Sequence record: MK250029.1
Length of the DNA stretch: 64,000 nt
Direction: 5' to 3' (one strand)
Of this stretch, positions 11,115-34,471 are shown piece after piece. A model generated the notes under the pieces. The model did no database searches. It was given only the letters and a program-made list of their open reading frames with translations, and was not told where the DNA came from. Position 1 is the stretch's first letter. Each line of letters opens with the position of its first letter. Both the position numbers and the translations under genes were made by a program.

Positions 11115-11137
11115 TATAACTATTCAACTTTTCATAA

Positions 11138-11207
11138 TATAGTTTAAAGGATTCGAACCTTTTTCTCTGCTCTCACAGTGTGTTGCCACATACACCATTA
11201 AACTATA
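11138..11207 (-). pseudogene. Degenerate tRNA-like element
   Basis: TATAGTTT/AAACTATA acceptor, GTGT/ACAC D-stem and AAAGG-TTCGAAT-CCTTT T-arm, but the anticodon arm is collapsed. Confidence 0.45.
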
Positions 11208-11252
11208 CATTATAAATGTCATTGATATAGTTATATAAACATTAATTCTTAA

Positions 11253-11360
11253 TGTTATTAAAGTCAGATTCGAACTGACACCTCAGCAAGGAGATAATAC
11301 CACTATGGGGTAACAGAGCATCCCAAGGCACTGACCAACAAATTATGCCTATTTAACAAC
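11253..11360 (-). ncRNA. Aberrant tRNA-like RNA (9-bp acceptor, extended D-stem)
   Basis: GTTGTTAAA/TTTAATAAC, AGGCA/TGCCT and GTCAG-TTCGAAT-CTGAC; no canonical anticodon loop. Confidence 0.45.
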
Positions 11361-15711: not shown

Positions 15712-16395
15712 TTACTCTAATATTTTACATTCCTCTTCTGTATATCTCTTATGTAATTCAGTTAACCACCATTTTGTTTTAACTTTTACTTTAGGCATTC
15801 GTTGTCCCTTTAATAATGTTGATCGCCTAATTACTACACCTTCTTTTATATATGGATATTTACAATTAGTTTCAGTCCAATCATTATTTTGTATATCTTT
15901 AATAAAGTCATTAACTAATGGTCCTGTATAAACTAATTGAGGTAATTCAATACCACAATCTTTAAATAAATCCATATAAATTTTTGGTTCAATATATCCT
16001 TTCTTTTTTATAAATACATCAATTAATGCAAGATGCATATTATCTTTATCTTCTAATGAATGAAATCCTGCGAAACTATGTTCTCCATACCATTCAAAGA
16101 AAAATGTAATTTCATCAACACCAGAGAATACATCTTTTTTACATCTATGTTGTTCAACAATATTAGATAATATAGTTTCATAATTATGTGATTTAAAATA
16201 ACGTACAGCATCACCAAATTGTTCAGATGACTCATCTACCATACATTTTCTTGAACCAAAATTTGTGAACATCTTTTTCTTAACAGAATATTTAGCGCAG
16301 AAATTTTGTCCATCTAATTTATTAAATGCCCATACTTGTTCACCTAGTAATTCAGTATTATATTTTATATTATCTATTGAATCGTAATGTTTCAT
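15712..16395 (-). CDS. ATP-dependent RNA ligase (Rnl2-like)
   Basis: Motif I NKLDGQN, motif III FFEWYG, motif IV EGVVIR, motif V KVKTKWW. Confidence 0.75.
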   Translation of the reverse strand: MKHYDSIDNIKYNTELLGEQVWAFNKLDGQNFCAKYSVKKKMFTNFGSRKCMVDESSEQFGDAVRYFKSHNYETILSNIVEQHRCKKDVFSGVDEITFFFEWYGEHSFAGFHSLEDKDNMHLALIDVFIKKKGYIEPKIYMDLFKDCGIELPQLVYTGPLVNDFIKDIQNNDWTETNCKYPYIKEGVVIRRSTLLKGQRMPKVKVKTKWWLTELHKRYTEEECKILE

Positions 16396-25492: not shown

Positions 25493-26143
25493 TTATAATT
25501 TATTTATATATTCCTTTAATTCTTTCGCTTTATATGGTAATTCATATTTTTTACACCATTTCTTTATAGCATTACCAGAAATACCATATAATCTTCCAAT
25601 ATTTTCAAATGTAATATATTTCCTAAATAATTCTATTAACTCTTCTTTTGAAGGAATAATATAATTTTTATTGGTTTTTATATTATCAGATATTTTATTA
25701 TACTAACTAATTATAGAATTGTCTTTAAATTTATATATTAAATTATTAACAGCATTATCATCTTTTATAATTTCTGTTGGACATTCTAGTAAATTACTAT
25801 GTATTTCTCGATGACAATTAGAACATACTAATACACATTTATCTAATTCAGTTTTTACTTTATTCCAACTTCTAGTATAACCTCTACTTCCTATTGCAAA
25901 ATCTTTCTATTCAGGATTAATATGATGAAATTCTAATGCTGAAATACATTTATTATAACCACAACATTGACATCTATTCCCTTTATATGCTAATGCTAAT
26001 AGTTTTATATGATCTCTTCGTTTCTAAACATATTCAGACTAACATTTCATGCATTTCCAATGAATTGAATTATCATAAAAATACTATTTAAATAAAGTAT
26101 TCCCATGCTTTTTGCATATACGATATTCTTTTATATCACTCAT
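25493..26143 (-). CDS. HNH homing endonuclease with C-terminal HTH (216 aa, code 15)
   Basis: CQCCGY...ALEFHHINP...CVLVCSNCHREIH; 5 TAG. Confidence 0.8.
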
Positions 26144-26147
26144 ATTG

Positions 26148-26221
26148 CGCTTCGGAATGGACTCGAACCATTGACTTTCTGATTAACAGTCAGACGTTCT
26201 AACCAACTGAACTACCGAAGC
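26148..26221 (-). tRNA. tRNA-Asn(GTT)
   Basis: GCTTCGG/CCGAAGC; TCTGA-CT GTT AA-TCAGA; G73. Confidence 0.94.
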
Positions 26222-26822: not shown

Positions 26823-27467
26823 TTAAATATTTTTATTTAAATATTGTTCAATTTTTTCTTTATTATTTTCATACCATCCTAACTATCTATTACATACAGA
26901 ACATAATAAACCTCTAAATTTTAATGTTTCATGATTATGATCAATACATAAATGCTTAGGTGCACTTTTTGATTTCCACTTTACACAATCATCTATTGTT
27001 CTTCCACAAATTTCACATGTTTTATGTTCTTCTCTATATTTTTCTAATTCATATTTAGTAATATCTAATATATCTCCATTTCGCATTTTTACTTTATCTG
27101 TAAACTATTTTGATATATATACCGGTTTATTACCATTATTACAAATAGAATTATATCTATTAGGATTTTCTTTACAATACATCATATGATATTTAAGGCC
27201 ATATTCAGTATATTCTTTACCACAAAATTCACATTTTACAAGTTTCTAATTACTAAAACGACCATCCTAATCTTCTTTAAATTTAATAGAATTTTTTAAA
27301 CTAGTAGATATTTTATCTTTCGTTTCTTGCGTCACTATATGAGAATTTGCACATGAACGAGAACAATATTTTTTATATTTTCCTTTTTGATAATTATTTT
27401 CTGTACATTCTATCTCAAACTATTTTCCACATTTTTTACATTCTATTACATATTTTTTTAATTCCAT
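26823..27467 (-). CDS. Endonuclease VII-type His-Me finger homing endonuclease (214 aa, code 15)
   Basis: N-terminal Zn-finger repeats (CKKCG, CSRSCAN, CEFCG); C-term CEICG...LCIDHNHETLKFRGLLCSVCN. Confidence 0.78.
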
Positions 27468-27933: not shown

Positions 27934-28752
27934 TTACATAACCTAATATAATTTATCTAATCGTTCATTATATCTCCAAAATTGACAATGTAATTTATTT
28001 ATAATATTATTCTAACGAATTATATCTTTATCTGATAAAATATTATTATATACATCTTTATAATGTTTAGGTTCATCATATTCAAATACAATATTTTTTT
28101 CTTTATCATATCCATCAAGAAAATAACCTAAAATCTCACATTCACCACCATTTCCGTAATACTATAAATTCCAGTTATTTTCTTTATTTAATTTTTCTAT
28201 ATATTCTCCAGAATTTTTATTAAATCGTGGATTGTGAAATCCTTTATTCTTTTTCAAATATTCAATTGCACCTAATCGCTATTTATATTTATGATCTTCT
28301 GTATGATGTGTACCTAAATTATAGGGTATATTTTTACCAGACATATAATTCTATCTAATTGTAATTGATTGCTATTTTACGCTATCACTTGTTTTTATAG
28401 TTAAACCTTTATTCCATGCAATATGTCCTTTTGTTGCTCCATTATTGCCATGATGTATTTCTCTATTAGGATTCATATGACAATATCTTTCATGATATTT
28501 TATACCATAAATTGAATATAAATTATTACAAAACTAACAATTAACTTTCTAACAATTAATTTTCTTTATCTTAAAATCTTTCTATTTAAACTATAAATCA
28601 ATATTATATTTTTCAACTATTATTTTTAAATAATTTATATTTCCTGAATTCTAATAACAATTTAACTATCGCAAACAATCATTATATGATGTACAATTAT
28701 TTAATTTCTAAATAATTTCATTATCACTAATCTATTTAATATTATTTTTCAT
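27934..28752 (-). CDS. Homing-type endonuclease, C-terminal PD-(D/E)XK/Vsr-like domain (272 aa, code 15)
   Basis: Over 10 in-frame TAG. AWNKGLT and LGTHHTE NUMOD-like repeats; YFLDGYDKEKNIVFEYDEPKH. Confidence 0.7.
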
Positions 28753-29271: not shown

Positions 29272-29425
29272 TGGACCCTCGTGGAATCGAACCACGACCT
29301 CTGGATTGTCTCTATAAATGGGATCGAACCATTAATAATAACCATTAATATTATAGAGATTGATTTAATACAGTTTACTCTGTTAATTCAGTCCAGCGTA
29401 CAGGCACCAGCCATACGCAAGGTCC
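29272..29425 (-). tRNA. tRNA-Phe(GAA) interrupted by a ~79-nt anticodon-loop intron (29308..29386) containing a tRNA-like module
   Basis: GGACCTT/AGGGTCC; CTGGA-CT GAA [intron] AA-TCCAG; CGTGG-TTCGATT-CCACG. Removing the intron leaves 75 nt. An alternative junction would give GAC (Val). Confidence 0.75.
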
Positions 29426-29434
29426 ATTTATGTG

Positions 29435-29514
29435 TTGCGGGTCTTAGAGTCGCACTAAGTATCGCATAGCTTATGAGACTAGCATGATTTATATATCTGT
29501 TTCACTCCCCCGCA
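29435..29514 (-). tRNA. tRNA-Met(CAT), atypical
   Basis: TGCGGGG/ACCCGCA; CTAGT-CT CAT AA-GCTAT; long D-loop; T-loop TGCGACT. Confidence 0.7.
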
Positions 29515-30415
29515 ATATTATATTGTTATTTTTTAAATAATTTATAAAAATATTAAACTATTCATTTACAAATGCTTTATTATATTTTCCCATATCTTTT
29601 ATTACATATGGTATCCATCCACATTTTTTTATTTCATTTATTTTTATATTATCTCTATTCTATACTTGTTTTACTGAATGCTATTTTTTTATTTGCTCAT
29701 AATGCCATTTACCATTCCATAAAATTGCATATTTTATTTTTGGTAAAATTATATCTGCATCCCAACCATTAAAAATTGGTTTATTATGAAAAACATTTTC
29801 TATATTAAAAAAATTTTCGCATAATGTACAAAATAATTTTTCATTTTTTGAACGACGCTATTCACTTTGAATATTGCAACTATGCTTACCGCCATTAGAT
29901 ATTTTTTTAAGTGCATCTTGTGATAAAAAATCTCGAAAATGTAACTAATAATATTCTCTACATTTTTCTGAACACATTTTTCTTGTGCATCCTATAATAT
30001 CTTTAAAATAAAAATACTATTTATTACAAACTATACATGTATATAATTTTCTATTAGAATTATGATTCTTTTTAACACTAATAGATGTTTTCTTTTTTGA
30101 TTCTTCTGACCGCGGAGCTCTATGTAAATTTCCATATGCAGTAGCACATTGTTTATTACAAAATCTACCTGAGCCGTAAGAACCATCTATTACTTTACCA
30201 CAATTTTCACAATATAAAATTTTACTTTCTTCTAATTGTTTCTGTTGTAATAAATATTCATTCTTTATCTTATTATAATCGATATTTCTTTTCTATAATA
30301 ATCGTCTAAATGTATTATTAGTTAAATTATATTTTTTATCTACATATCTTAATGAATAATTACAATCCTTATATATCTATATTAATTCATTATTTGTTAA
30401 TCCTTTAATATTCAT
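29489..30415 (-). CDS. Homing-type endonuclease, PD-(D/E)XK-like (308 aa, code 15)
   Basis: CENCG..GSYGSGRFCNKQCA Zn finger; GWDADIILPKIKYAILWNGKWH. The 3' end overlaps the adjacent tRNA by ~26 nt. Confidence 0.7.
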
Positions 30416-31219: not shown

Positions 31220-31630
31220 TTAATTTGATGGATGATAATAATCTTTCCAATTATTAAATGTATTCTTTATTGATAAATTTTGTAAATATTCAACAGAATA
31301 ACATTTATTAGTATGTATTATTCTATGATGATTTGGACATACAATAATTAAATTTGAAACATTATCAGTTCCACCATTACATTTCTCAATTATATGATGA
31401 ATATCACATGTTGATTCATTCCAACCACATATTGCACAACCTATTTTAGAACGATTTAAAATCTTTGATATTGTTCTTTTTGAACAATCTAATATAGAAT
31501 TTATTTCTTGTTCTTTTGAATGTTTTCTATGTTGTTTACATTCATCACATCTTATATGCCTATCTTTACGGATTGCCTTATTAGTTAAAAAAGATTTTCC
31601 ACATATTTCACATATATACTAATATTCCAT
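31220..31630 (-). CDS. HNH endonuclease (136 aa, code 15)
   Basis: CAICGW...CDIHHIIEKCNGGTDNVSNLIIVCPNHHRIIH; TAG at codon 4. Confidence 0.85.
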
Positions 31631-32065: not shown

Positions 32066-32965
32066 TTATTTTTTAAATATTATATCAAATTTTGAAAATA
32101 TATCATAATTTATTTTATTTGGATATTCTCCATATTTCTATGTCCATATATTAATCTTATTTTTTAATTCATCTAATGATATATCACATTTTATACTTTT
32201 TGATGCATTTAAGCTATGCTACATTAACTAACAATTTGCTGGATGTGATATTAAATAAGGATCTATTAATTCTTTATATCCTTCATTACGTGAAAATATA
32301 TGATCTCTAGAAACACCATTTAAATTATTACCTGCATTTTTTGGTTTATACCAGCCATATAATGTTATTTGATTAAAATCAAATTCTTTTGGATAACTAT
32401 TTAATGCAAATTTAAATTTACACTAATTATTATATAACTATTTTAAAGTTTTATTTTCAACACGATAACGGCTATTATGTGCACATGAATTACTACAAAA
32501 TTTCTATTTTCTTCTCTTACTTTCAAATACTTTTCCGCAATATTCACATATATGAATATGTGTTGCATGTATTGCACATGTTGTATTTGTTACATGTTTT
32601 GTATATTTTATATTATTACATTTATTTGATAATGTTTTAGAAATTTTCTAATTTTTCTAATTTAAATTTGTATGTGCATTCGTTAATTTTCTTGCGCACT
32701 ATGTTGAACATGTCTACTTATACTTATTTAATGCATACATATTTGGAGTAACATATACTTTATATTCATTATTACATATAACACAATTACATGTATATTC
32801 TTTACGTTTACGGTGATTATGCATTTTTTCTTTTGTATTCTAAAGTATTTCTTCATACTTTGGATTTTTATTACACCAACGTACATGATTTGCATATGAC
32901 TTTATATTCATATACTAAGTTTCTCCACAATAAGGACACTTCTTTTCAATTTTTAATAATTCCAT
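32066..32965 (-). CDS. HNH homing endonuclease with Zn-finger repeats (299 aa, code 15)
   Basis: CPYCG, CEYCG..FCSNSCA; VSRDHIFS...SHPANCQLMQHSLNASK; over 10 TAG. Confidence 0.75.
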
Positions 32966-33572: not shown

Positions 33573-33681
33573 AAAAACGTTTAAAAATATATTCAGAAAT
33601 TTAATATATATTCGCCTCGACGATACTATCTGAACATAGAAGGTACATCCTTTATACATACTAAATCATATTTTTAAATTG

Positions 33682-33845
33682 CGGGAATAGAGGGAATCGA
33701 ACCCACGCCCAGAGATTAGCTACATAAATTGGATTCGAACCAATTAAACTTTATAAAGTATGATACCCAACAGCATTATGTAGTTTAATTTAATCAGGTT
33801 GTTTCCTGTATACAGTCTCTTGCTCGACCTTCGAGCTATATTCCC
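33682..33845 (-). tRNA. tRNA-Asn(GTT) interrupted by a ~93-nt anticodon intron (33719..33811) containing a tRNA-like module
   Basis: GGGAATA/TATTCCC-G73; GCTC-GAAGGTC-GAGC; AGAGA-CT GT[intron]T AA-TCTCT. Removing the intron leaves 71 nt. An alternative junction would give GTA (Tyr). Confidence 0.75.
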
Positions 33846-34471
33846 AACTTTTGCATTAAGGTCAGCAAACCACACATCTCGCTGTCATATAAGCATCCAC
33901 GATTACTATCGTTCCATGTATACAACCATATCCAGCCTGTGCGAATATTTGTTCTATTTGGCTCGTGGCGATATTCTTTTCGAAAGCAATAGCAAATATT
34001 AAAAGGACTTTAATATTCTATAATATCGCCTGATGCACTTTGGACAAGCAGTATAATATAAGAAATCTTATATATAGCCTGATATATTTCAATCATATTT
34101 TTCTTTGGCAGCATCATTCTATAAATTCATATAATTATTGTTTTCTTCCTCACATAAGTAAAATACTTATGAAGTTACTTTTCAATAAAGTTCATAGTAT
34201 ATCTGATTAACTTTTCAGTAACAGAAACATTTATTATATGAATAATACTTATATTTGTCTATCAAAATTTCAAAGAACAATATATTTTTTAATTAACAAT
34301 ACAAAGATACATCTTTATTTTGAATTAAAAAAATATTCATTGAAATTTTTGAAATATTTTTTTGTTTATTATCAATATGTCAAAGAACTAAATGTTTGTT
34401 ATTTTATTAACAACACAAAGATACATTATATATTTCAAATAAAAAAATAAGTCTATAAAAAATTGATATTT

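Follow-up and report, generated by a model that had tools for sequence, protein, structure and literature searches.

The window analysed here, 64,000 nucleotides of record MK250029.1 (window position equals MK250029.1 position minus 431205), holds a transfer RNA (tRNA) gene that is split by a 93-nt intron. In the 3 kb around this gene the DNA is 100% identical to Prevotella phage Lak-C1 (MK250029.1) and 98% identical to Lak-A1 and Lak-A2, and in part only it matches the baboon Lak-B genomes at 84% identity. The surroundings contain about 25% G+C and form an array of minus-strand tRNA genes. The layout and coordinates are those given in an earlier note on this DNA, with CTGT and TAA separated by 93 nt and everything on the minus strand:

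33845..33682, minus strand: split tRNA-Asn(GUU) gene, a 164-nt precursor including the 93-nt insert
33845..33812, minus strand: 5' exon of tRNA-Asn(GUU), positions 1-35, 34 nt, ending ...AGAGA-CTGT and identical in uninterrupted alleles
33811..33719, minus strand: intron, 93 nt, between U35 and U36, scoring 90.1 bits with our covariance model R1; the sequence of Table S6 in Devoto et al. 2019, with corrected borders
33718..33682, minus strand: 3' exon of tRNA-Asn, U36 to discriminator G73, 37 nt, starting TAA-TCTCT

The borders of the intron are fixed by empty alleles. Six DNA contigs, two from IMG/VR and four from metagenomes (L009, L010, L046 and L048-L050), carry exons identical to those of Lak-C1 and Lak-A1 without the insert, so that the junction between CTGT and TAA is unique and cannot slide, which places the intron between U35 and U36, inside the anticodon. 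The syntenic gene of Lak-B1 is an uninterrupted tRNA-Asn with the loop CTGTTAA and closely similar exons, flanked by the same neighbours as in Lak-C1, Val-TAC on one side and Ile and Trp on the other. When the exons are joined in silico, ARAGORN calls tRNA-Asn(gtt), and G73 is the discriminator expected for Asn as an identity element for asparaginyl-tRNA synthetase (AsnRS). The interrupted gene, by contrast, is found by ARAGORN in intron mode only and called Ser(gct), because the program sets the intron after position 33. The split gene is thus confirmed as a real tRNA-Asn(GUU) interrupted by an intron of the Lak megaphage lineage, and the empty alleles together with the call on the joined exons bear out the earlier note in naming Asn(GTT), not Tyr(GTA), as the host. 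We read the identical 93 nt in Lak-A1, Lak-C1 and three further contigs, and A2 is also listed with this intron (Devoto et al. 2019, PMC6784885).

The intron itself was already known. Using tRNAscan in eukaryotic mode, Devoto et al. (2019, Nat Microbiol, PMC6784885) had reported "enigmatic introns" from the tRNAs of Lak megaphages, and their Table S6 lists the same 93 nt as the "tRNA Tyr GTA intron" of C1, A1 and A2, at 37/38 and with no Rfam hit; as an anticodon-loop insert with a Table S6 sequence, the 93-nt intron belongs to the Lak tRNA introns of that study. The published host identity, Tyr(GTA), is wrong: this tRNAscan call and the Ser(gct) call of ARAGORN are both artefacts of the programs' intron placement. 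The same paper also lists introns in Phe, Thr and Gly tRNAs, with counts of two for C1 and one for the B genomes, and reports that intron sequences are identical across cohorts, that the Thr border shifts by one base on alignment with an intronless allele, and that the Thr intron may itself encode a tRNA, Rfam finding a tRNA in its module (PMC6784885). It contains no Phe intron for Lak-C1 or Lak-B, no Lys, Glu or Pro introns, and no mention of the two-module build, of covariation, of a match between the terminal C and tRNA trailers, or of kinship between the 5' module and elements of crAss-like phages. Later papers on Lak phages and on recoding added nothing on mechanism, and literature searches returned no follow-up. 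What is new here is the match of the terminal C to the phage tRNA trailers and the recognition of the 5' module as a copy of a crAss-like element.

From 5' to 3' the insert consists of ATA, a hairpin (CAGG-AAACAA-CCTG), the linker ATTAAATTAAA, an 8-bp stem (CTACATAA/TTATGTAG), a 5-bp T arm (ATTGG-TTCGAAT-CCAAT) and a C, which we divide as follows:

33784..33811, minus strand: 5' module, comprising AUA, hairpin CAGG/CCUG (loop AAACAA, 33795-33808), which covaries in the family, and an A/U linker (33784-33794)
33720..33783, minus strand: tRNA-like module, with acceptor strands 33776-33783 and 33720-33727, T arm 33728-33744 and a GGG run in the D-like region
33719..33719, minus strand: terminal C of the intron, equivalent of the C after the acceptor helix in Lak-C1 tRNA genes

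Folding gives a z-score of -2.8 for the gene as a whole and of -2.4 for the isolated intron, and there is no open reading frame (ORF) inside the intron. The inner module of this 93-nt form has an acceptor, a T arm and a D-like hairpin bearing GG, and no anticodon arm; it is not the full cloverleaf of a functional tRNA, gives no tRNA match and stays under the Rfam tRNA threshold. It does have the coaxial acceptor/T stack and the elbow, formed by the T loop and the GG of the D loop, that characterize elements processed by RNase P and RNase Z. The corresponding module of the Thr intron has, in our reading, an anticodon-like loop of 6 nt.

The Asn intron is one member of a family that comprises at least 13 different sequences from seven tRNA isotypes (Asn, Phe, Thr, Gly, Lys, Glu and Pro), carried, as far as seen, by Lak-like phages only. 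A sister lies nearby in the window:

29273..29425, minus strand: tRNA-Phe(GAA) gene with a sister intron (79 nt, 29386..29308, between positions 36 and 37) of the same build as the Asn intron

We built the covariance model R1 from the first ten distinct sequences (three Asn length variants of 93, 129 and 141 nt, three Phe, two Gly and two Thr) and ran it on fetched sequences. Over the entire Lak-C1 genome it finds exactly three members, and in distant Lak-like contigs it finds new ones in tRNA-Lys(TTT) and tRNA-Glu(TTC), both in L047, and in tRNA-Pro(TGG), in L015. The earlier note had taken the Asn and Phe inserts for one architecture and one family, to be checked by a covariance model and abandoned if no other members turned up; the two inserts do have the same build, and since the model retrieved the Lys, Glu and Pro members, which share it, the proposal stands. 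Lak-B1 likewise has a tRNA-Phe intron (L005:186-271), and the Phe introns of Lak-C1 and A1 differ by one T-loop base.

Family members are 79-141 nt long. All begin W-U-A and end in C (13/13), and all have a hairpin of 4-6 bp three bases in, with an A-rich loop of 6-7 nt, followed by an A-rich linker of 8-12 nt, then a perfect 13-bp stack of acceptor and T stem, together with a D-like hairpin whose loop contains GG; the T loop is TTCGWWY, and the middle is variable (18-79 nt). Insertion is at 35/36 in Asn and Glu and at 36/37 in the other isotypes, and the 5' splice site is constant relative to the intron hairpin, not to the host tRNA body. The IMG/VR scans with the family pattern and with the 16-mer hairpin pattern discussed below required exact matches, and the JGI metagenomes were scanned once, with the exon pattern only, so that distant relatives could have been missed by searches limited to patterns and fetched sequence. 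Over 185,579 prokaryote species genomes the family pattern gave 40 matches, none of which passed the structural test.

Selection on the structure, which the earlier note had proposed, is supported by covariation; the control of tRNA maturation or the protection of anticodons against host nucleases, which the note also envisaged, is speculative and finds no support here. In structural register, all 130 cells of the acceptor/T stack (13 positions in ten distinct members) are paired, with compensatory changes at 12 of the 13 positions. In a model-made alignment of the 13 distinct sequences, which leans towards the model because it was fitted to it, 91.3% of cells are paired, a level reached by 0 of 500 shuffles (63.8% in shuffles), and 14 of 17 pairs carry changes on both sides; slid partner columns, used as a control, give 33-43%. 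The unpaired cells reflect a one-base register shift of the Phe type. Compensatory changes are found both between and within intron types, examples of the latter being an A-T to G-C change at stack position 8 among the Asn variants and two T-stem swaps between the Phe introns of Lak-C1 and Lak-B1.

Lak-C1 has a second gene for the same tRNA, in which the intron can also be found in other genomes:

26221..26147, minus strand: paralogous tRNA-Asn(GUU), uninterrupted in Lak-C1; the Lak-B1 orthologue has a 141-nt version of the same intron

The 141-nt and probably also the 129-nt Asn variants occupy this paralog, which shares only the loop and its nearest neighbours with the gene at 33845..33682. 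At the latter, the flanks (300 bp on each side) of the intronless contig L048 are 99.5% identical to those of the intron-bearing L045, whereas L045 and L052, both intron-bearing, are only 98.4% identical, so that presence of the intron does not follow the relatedness of the flanks; the 93-nt sequence is itself identical in all carriers seen. Because occupied and empty alleles share identical exons, and because the same intron is present in two tRNA-Asn paralogs, the sequences indicate that the Asn intron is, or was, mobile, in line with the mobile intron class envisaged by the earlier note.

Three HNH/endonuclease VII ORFs lie within the tRNA array on the minus strand (25493-26143, 26823-27467 and 31220-31630), open only if TAG is read as Gln (one to five TAG each), and are placed immediately 3' of tRNA-Asn and tRNA-Tyr and 5' of tRNA-Asp; none adjoins the split Asn gene. 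They look like free-standing homing endonucleases and may drive homing at the DNA level. Retro-mobility through a phage enzyme was discarded, as a profile search for RVT_1 (reverse transcriptase) gave no match in the Lak-C1 or Lak-B1 genome. An element of the IS200/IS605 type, which the subterminal hairpins and the seamless insertion had brought to mind, was set aside in view of the differing left flanks (CTGT, TTGT, TGAA, TTCC, TTTT and others) and the plainly tRNA-like 3' part, and a tRNA-targeting integrase in view of the lack of a duplicated tRNA 3' half.

The interrupted host tRNAs look functional, as far as their sequences can tell. tRNA-Phe has an intron in both Lak-B1 and Lak-C1, where the gene order around it differs, and by our own count five exon positions differ between the two, none of them in conflict with the cloverleaf; one of these differences is compensatory, with U:A in place of C:G in the T stem of the host tRNA. 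Furthermore, the interrupted genes are the only tRNA-Phe and the only tRNA-Gly(TCC) genes of Lak-C1. Conservation of the Phe exons and reliance on sole Phe and Gly(TCC) genes argue, indirectly, that the inserts are removed from RNA. Among assembled contigs of RNA libraries, one from pig gut skips exactly 33719-33811, and contigs of three runs retain the Phe intron; as intronless DNA alleles exist, such contigs cannot separate splicing from DNA alleles. A further RNA-library contig (run X9) carries 484 different letters instead of the 93-nt intron, across window positions 33717-33812; this could be a far longer variant or another insert, and it was not found in the IMG/VR or JGI collections.

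The 3' border of the intron resembles the 3' ends of the phage's own tRNA genes. In Lak-C1, with a genomic C content of 13%, a C directly follows the acceptor helix in 28 of 30 tRNA genes (in the window, for example, at 26146, 24917 and 33681), and the base after it is A in 21 and T, itself followed by A, in 7. CCA is not clearly encoded in any of the Lak-C1 tRNA genes, and the genome has a homologue of the CCA-adding enzyme. The acceptor helix is often 8 bp long in these genes because base -1 pairs with base 73, and the tRNA-like module of the intron has the same 8-bp helix and the same C; its 13-bp stack is therefore the top half of an ordinary Lak pre-tRNA. The 13-bp helix that the earlier note had pointed out in both introns is thus nothing special: it is the normal 12 bp plus the -1:73 pair that many of the phage tRNA genes allow. 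The exon bases after the intron C (AA; UAA in Asn) resemble a normal trailer in Asn, Phe, Thr, Gly and Lys. The 3' splice site thus coincides with the place where Lak tRNA 3' ends are presumably made, and the C after the helix suggests an unusual 3'-end rule for the phage tRNAs, a cut after position 74.

The 5' module has relatives of a different kind. The hairpin of the Phe and Lys introns is the 16-mer TAACAGARTAAACTGT, present in more than 117 IMG/VR contigs, roughly as many as expected by chance alone for a 16-mer; 72 of 121 occurrences (43 distinct contexts), however, are directly followed by an A-rich box, AAAWYA. Hairpin (ACAG-ARTAAA-CTGT) and box form an intergenic element of about 26 nt that recurs unchanged as the 5' module of the Phe and Lys introns; its intergenic copies lie 0, 17-19 or 34-39 nt upstream of a same-strand start codon and often directly after a terminator-like hairpin. 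The contigs are of crAss-like size, one of them related to phage cr272_1, and the element loci (L105-L226, for example L110:2653-2668) include three copies in L180 and two each in L182 and L148; in one variant the hairpin is kept through a compensatory change. A loose structural scan of Lak-C1 found the element convincing only inside the Gly and Phe introns, the loop of the Asn hairpin being outside the loop pattern of that scan, and a unit of leader element plus tRNA outside Lak was found in 0 of 122 loci. To judge by this identity, the 5' module copies, in the Phe and Lys introns, an element that is frequent between the genes of crAss-like phages. This element of about 26 nt, of which we found no description, is therefore a promoter, or an mRNA 5' leader and processing signal, of other Bacteroidales phages. 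A tRNA with a similar module also occurs in an unrelated 76-kb viral contig (L016:5801-5919, minus strand; IMGVR_UViG_3300032373_000004), where TAACA, a 7-bp hairpin, ACAAAATCAAA and CTACAT follow one another at no clean anticodon-loop position.

None of the established ways of removing an intron fits this anatomy. Rfam gives no family match to the intron at the gathering score or at E values up to 10, and none of the small self-cleaving ribozymes (hammerhead, HDV-like, twister, hatchet, pistol) is found at E up to 10 within 33600-33900; bulge-helix-bulge, hammerhead and HDV-like folds were rejected both by eye and with Rfam. Pairing of the intron hairpin with the 5' exon as a guide sequence was likewise dropped, being possible in Asn, Thr, Phe and Gly and failing in Glu, Lys and Pro. 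That this is nevertheless an ordinary intron, either group I, as in bacterial tRNAs, or bulge-helix-bulge, as in archaea and eukaryotes, would accord with the anticodon-loop location common to both classes and with its acceptance by tRNAscan in eukaryotic mode, but we give this practically no chance. The introns are 79-141 nt long, have no group I core and no Rfam Intron_gpI match, end in C instead of G in 13 of 13 cases, and lie, in Asn, at 35/36 instead of 37/38; the 5' border is a single-stranded stretch 3 nt before a 4-bp hairpin, and the 13-bp helix is unbroken at the 3' border and so provides no second bulge 4 bp away. Size, terminal C, variable position and this unbroken helix exclude both classes as far as sequence can show, and EndA (PF01974), which matches archaeal control genomes, has no match in Lak-C1 or Lak-B1.

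Like the Lak intron, archaeal and eukaryal tRNA introns are short, lack an ORF and sit in the anticodon loop, and their protein-dependent excision would be paralleled by cutting and ligating here, but the Lak intron has no bulge-helix-bulge, a non-canonical and variable position, no EndA homologue and a bacterial setting. It shares that setting, the anticodon loop and a patchy presence with the group I introns of cyanobacterial tRNA-Leu and Azoarcus tRNA-Ile, from which it differs in its size, less than half that of the smallest group I intron, and in lacking a catalytic core, a terminal G and any guide pairing consistent throughout the family. In MALAT1 mascRNA, plant mitochondrial t-elements and mitochondrial tRNA punctuation, an embedded tRNA shape brings about its own cleavage at both ends by RNase P and RNase Z, and such tRNA-like processing signals are our working analogy for the 3' border of the Lak intron; these elements, however, mark transcript ends, none lies inside an anticodon loop and none needs its flanks to be religated. 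Religation has a precedent in phage T4, where Pnkp and the ligase Rnl1 reseal an anticodon-loop break, although T4 repair answers damage by a host anticodon nuclease and removes no intron. Lak phages have several RNA-ligase homologues (four to seven PF09414 RNA-ligase-like matches per genome) but no match to the Rnl1 type of T4 by Pfam, only to the PF09414 type. One of these is encoded in the window, and a PDB sequence search with it gave no match:

15712..16395, minus strand: RNA-ligase homologue (PF09414, phrog_548), a candidate sealing enzyme by inferred role

The reading we prefer, though we rate it slightly short of an even chance, is that the mobile Lak intron is removed by proteins, through RNA-processing cuts and sealing by a ligase, and does not splice itself. 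The sequences show how the intron is built, that it has a covarying family, that it is or was mobile and that known splicing systems are missing, whereas each enzymatic step is inferred. The intron would be a cassette of a leader or promoter-like hairpin element, at the 5' end, and a truncated tRNA-like gene. Its 3' cut would fall after the terminal C, where the cell or the phage trims the 3' ends of Lak tRNAs, the UAA with which the exon begins (AA after the sister introns) taking the place of the normal trailer, and its 5' cut at the fixed edge of the leader hairpin, between N and WUA, by an RNase E/G-like or other endonuclease; the U at +2 in all seven isotypes recalls the preference of RNase E. 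RNase P might free the tRNA-like RNA. The tRNA halves would stay together in the still-folded tRNA body until the nick is sealed by a phage RNA ligase, and as the proposed cuts leave a 5'-phosphate and a 3'-hydroxyl, an ATP-dependent ligase could join them without end healing.

Several observations count against this route. The 5' cut has no nuclease assigned to it, and should the 5' module act as a promoter and not as an RNA leader, there would be no need for RNA to be cleaved at its 5' edge. Profile searches found neither RtcB nor RNase Z in the phage; the T4 Rnl1 model matched nothing there either, but as it was equally silent on every control genome, an Rnl1 ligase may have been missed. 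The usual RNase Z cut, after position 73, would fall one base short of position 74, and the Glu and Pro members, with CAC and GAU after the C, fit a trailer less well. Finally, the pig-gut contig that skips the 93 nt proves nothing on splicing and may come from an intronless strain.

The main rival is that the insert is never spliced and is a selfish or useful mini-gene, a promoter with a tRNA-like RNA, that inactivates the tRNA gene it enters; the tRNA-like RNA would be the product, freed by RNase P and a 3'-end nuclease, and the host halves by-products. In its favour, the element matched by the 5' module looks like a promoter, being found downstream of terminators and 0-40 nt ahead of start codons in many other phages. 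The intact second tRNA-Asn of Lak-C1, the occurrence of alleles both with and without the insert, and the strong selection on the structure of the tRNA-like module would also agree with a mini-gene. We nevertheless consider this unlikely, as the cloverleaf of the interrupted tRNA-Phe is intact across the deep split between Lak-B and Lak-C, with its own T-stem compensation and in flanks that are not syntenic, as no other tRNA-Phe or tRNA-Gly(TCC) gene could stand in for the interrupted copies in Lak-C1, and as seven independent insertions all fall at 35/36 or 36/37, which is what one would expect if removal must restore the tRNA. One could also speculate that the intron is a new small self-splicing RNA, in which the anticodon stem, the hairpin and the tRNA-like arm meet in a three-way junction that, together with the A-rich loop and linker, forms a ribozyme able to cut at either border and to rejoin the exons by reversible transesterification. 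The lack of any protein splicing machinery found in the phage, the high conservation of the single-stranded A-rich segments (loop ARUAAA, linker AAAUYAA) and the fact that the borders are set by the intron, not the exons, would agree with such an RNA. Yet Rfam yields no ribozyme or intron match even with E values as high as 10, the length of the middle part is free to vary, the conserved 5' module also occurs outside introns in other phages, where splicing makes no sense, and we know of no natural self-splicing intron below about 200 nt, all of which makes a ribozyme very improbable.

Protein-based removal could also be taken a step further, to a doubtful but possible reading in which these introns are a new class defined by borrowed RNA-processing signals instead of a splicing machine. 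Their 5' end would be an mRNA-leader processing site and their 3' end the 3'-processing site of a tRNA-like gene; RNA would have been ligated into nuclease-broken anticodon loops by phage repair ligases and then fixed in DNA, and the same nucleases and ligases would remove it, as "RNA repair run in a loop".

The tRNA genes of Lak-C1 hold further peculiarities. Two free-standing tRNA-like genes in the window (11137-11208 and 11254-11360, minus strand) have 9+5 bp stacks and aberrant middles; Rfam gives 32 bits for one of them, and ARAGORN in intron mode fuses the pair into a "tRNA-Thr(cgt) with a 143-nt intron". Elsewhere in the Lak-C1 record, at 89071-89173, 89184-89304, 174723-174824 and 537386-537557, there are over-long tRNA-like genes (102-172 nt) with good acceptor/T stacks and large internal inserts unlike the Asn/Phe intron family. 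The record also contains two tRNA(CTA) genes and one tRNA(TTA) gene (184533-184605, 185438-185512 and 254126-254198), and the CTA suppressors are consistent with the reading of TAG as Gln that has been reported for Lak phages. Between the tRNA genes of the window, three minus-strand ORFs (29489-30415, 27934-28752 and 32066-32965) contain 8-14 in-frame TAG codons and match no family, or only phage families of unknown function.

For the published tRNA inventory of Lak phages, our results replace Tyr by Asn and show that the anticodon itself is split. All introns of bacteria and their viruses are generally held to be self-splicing. An intron of 79-141 nt that occurs in seven isotypes and belongs to neither group I/II nor the bulge-helix-bulge class implies that tRNA can be cut and rejoined in a bacterial cell by a route not yet described; if the reading as a class defined by borrowed processing signals is true, this would be the first protein-dependent tRNA intron without a bulge-helix-bulge in the bacterial world. 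The 5' module shared with crAss-like phages points to an exchange of regulatory RNA or DNA modules among unrelated Bacteroidales phages. Since the interrupted genes include the only ones for tRNA-Phe and tRNA-Gly(TCC), the fate of these introns bears on how a 540-kb recoded phage runs its translation.
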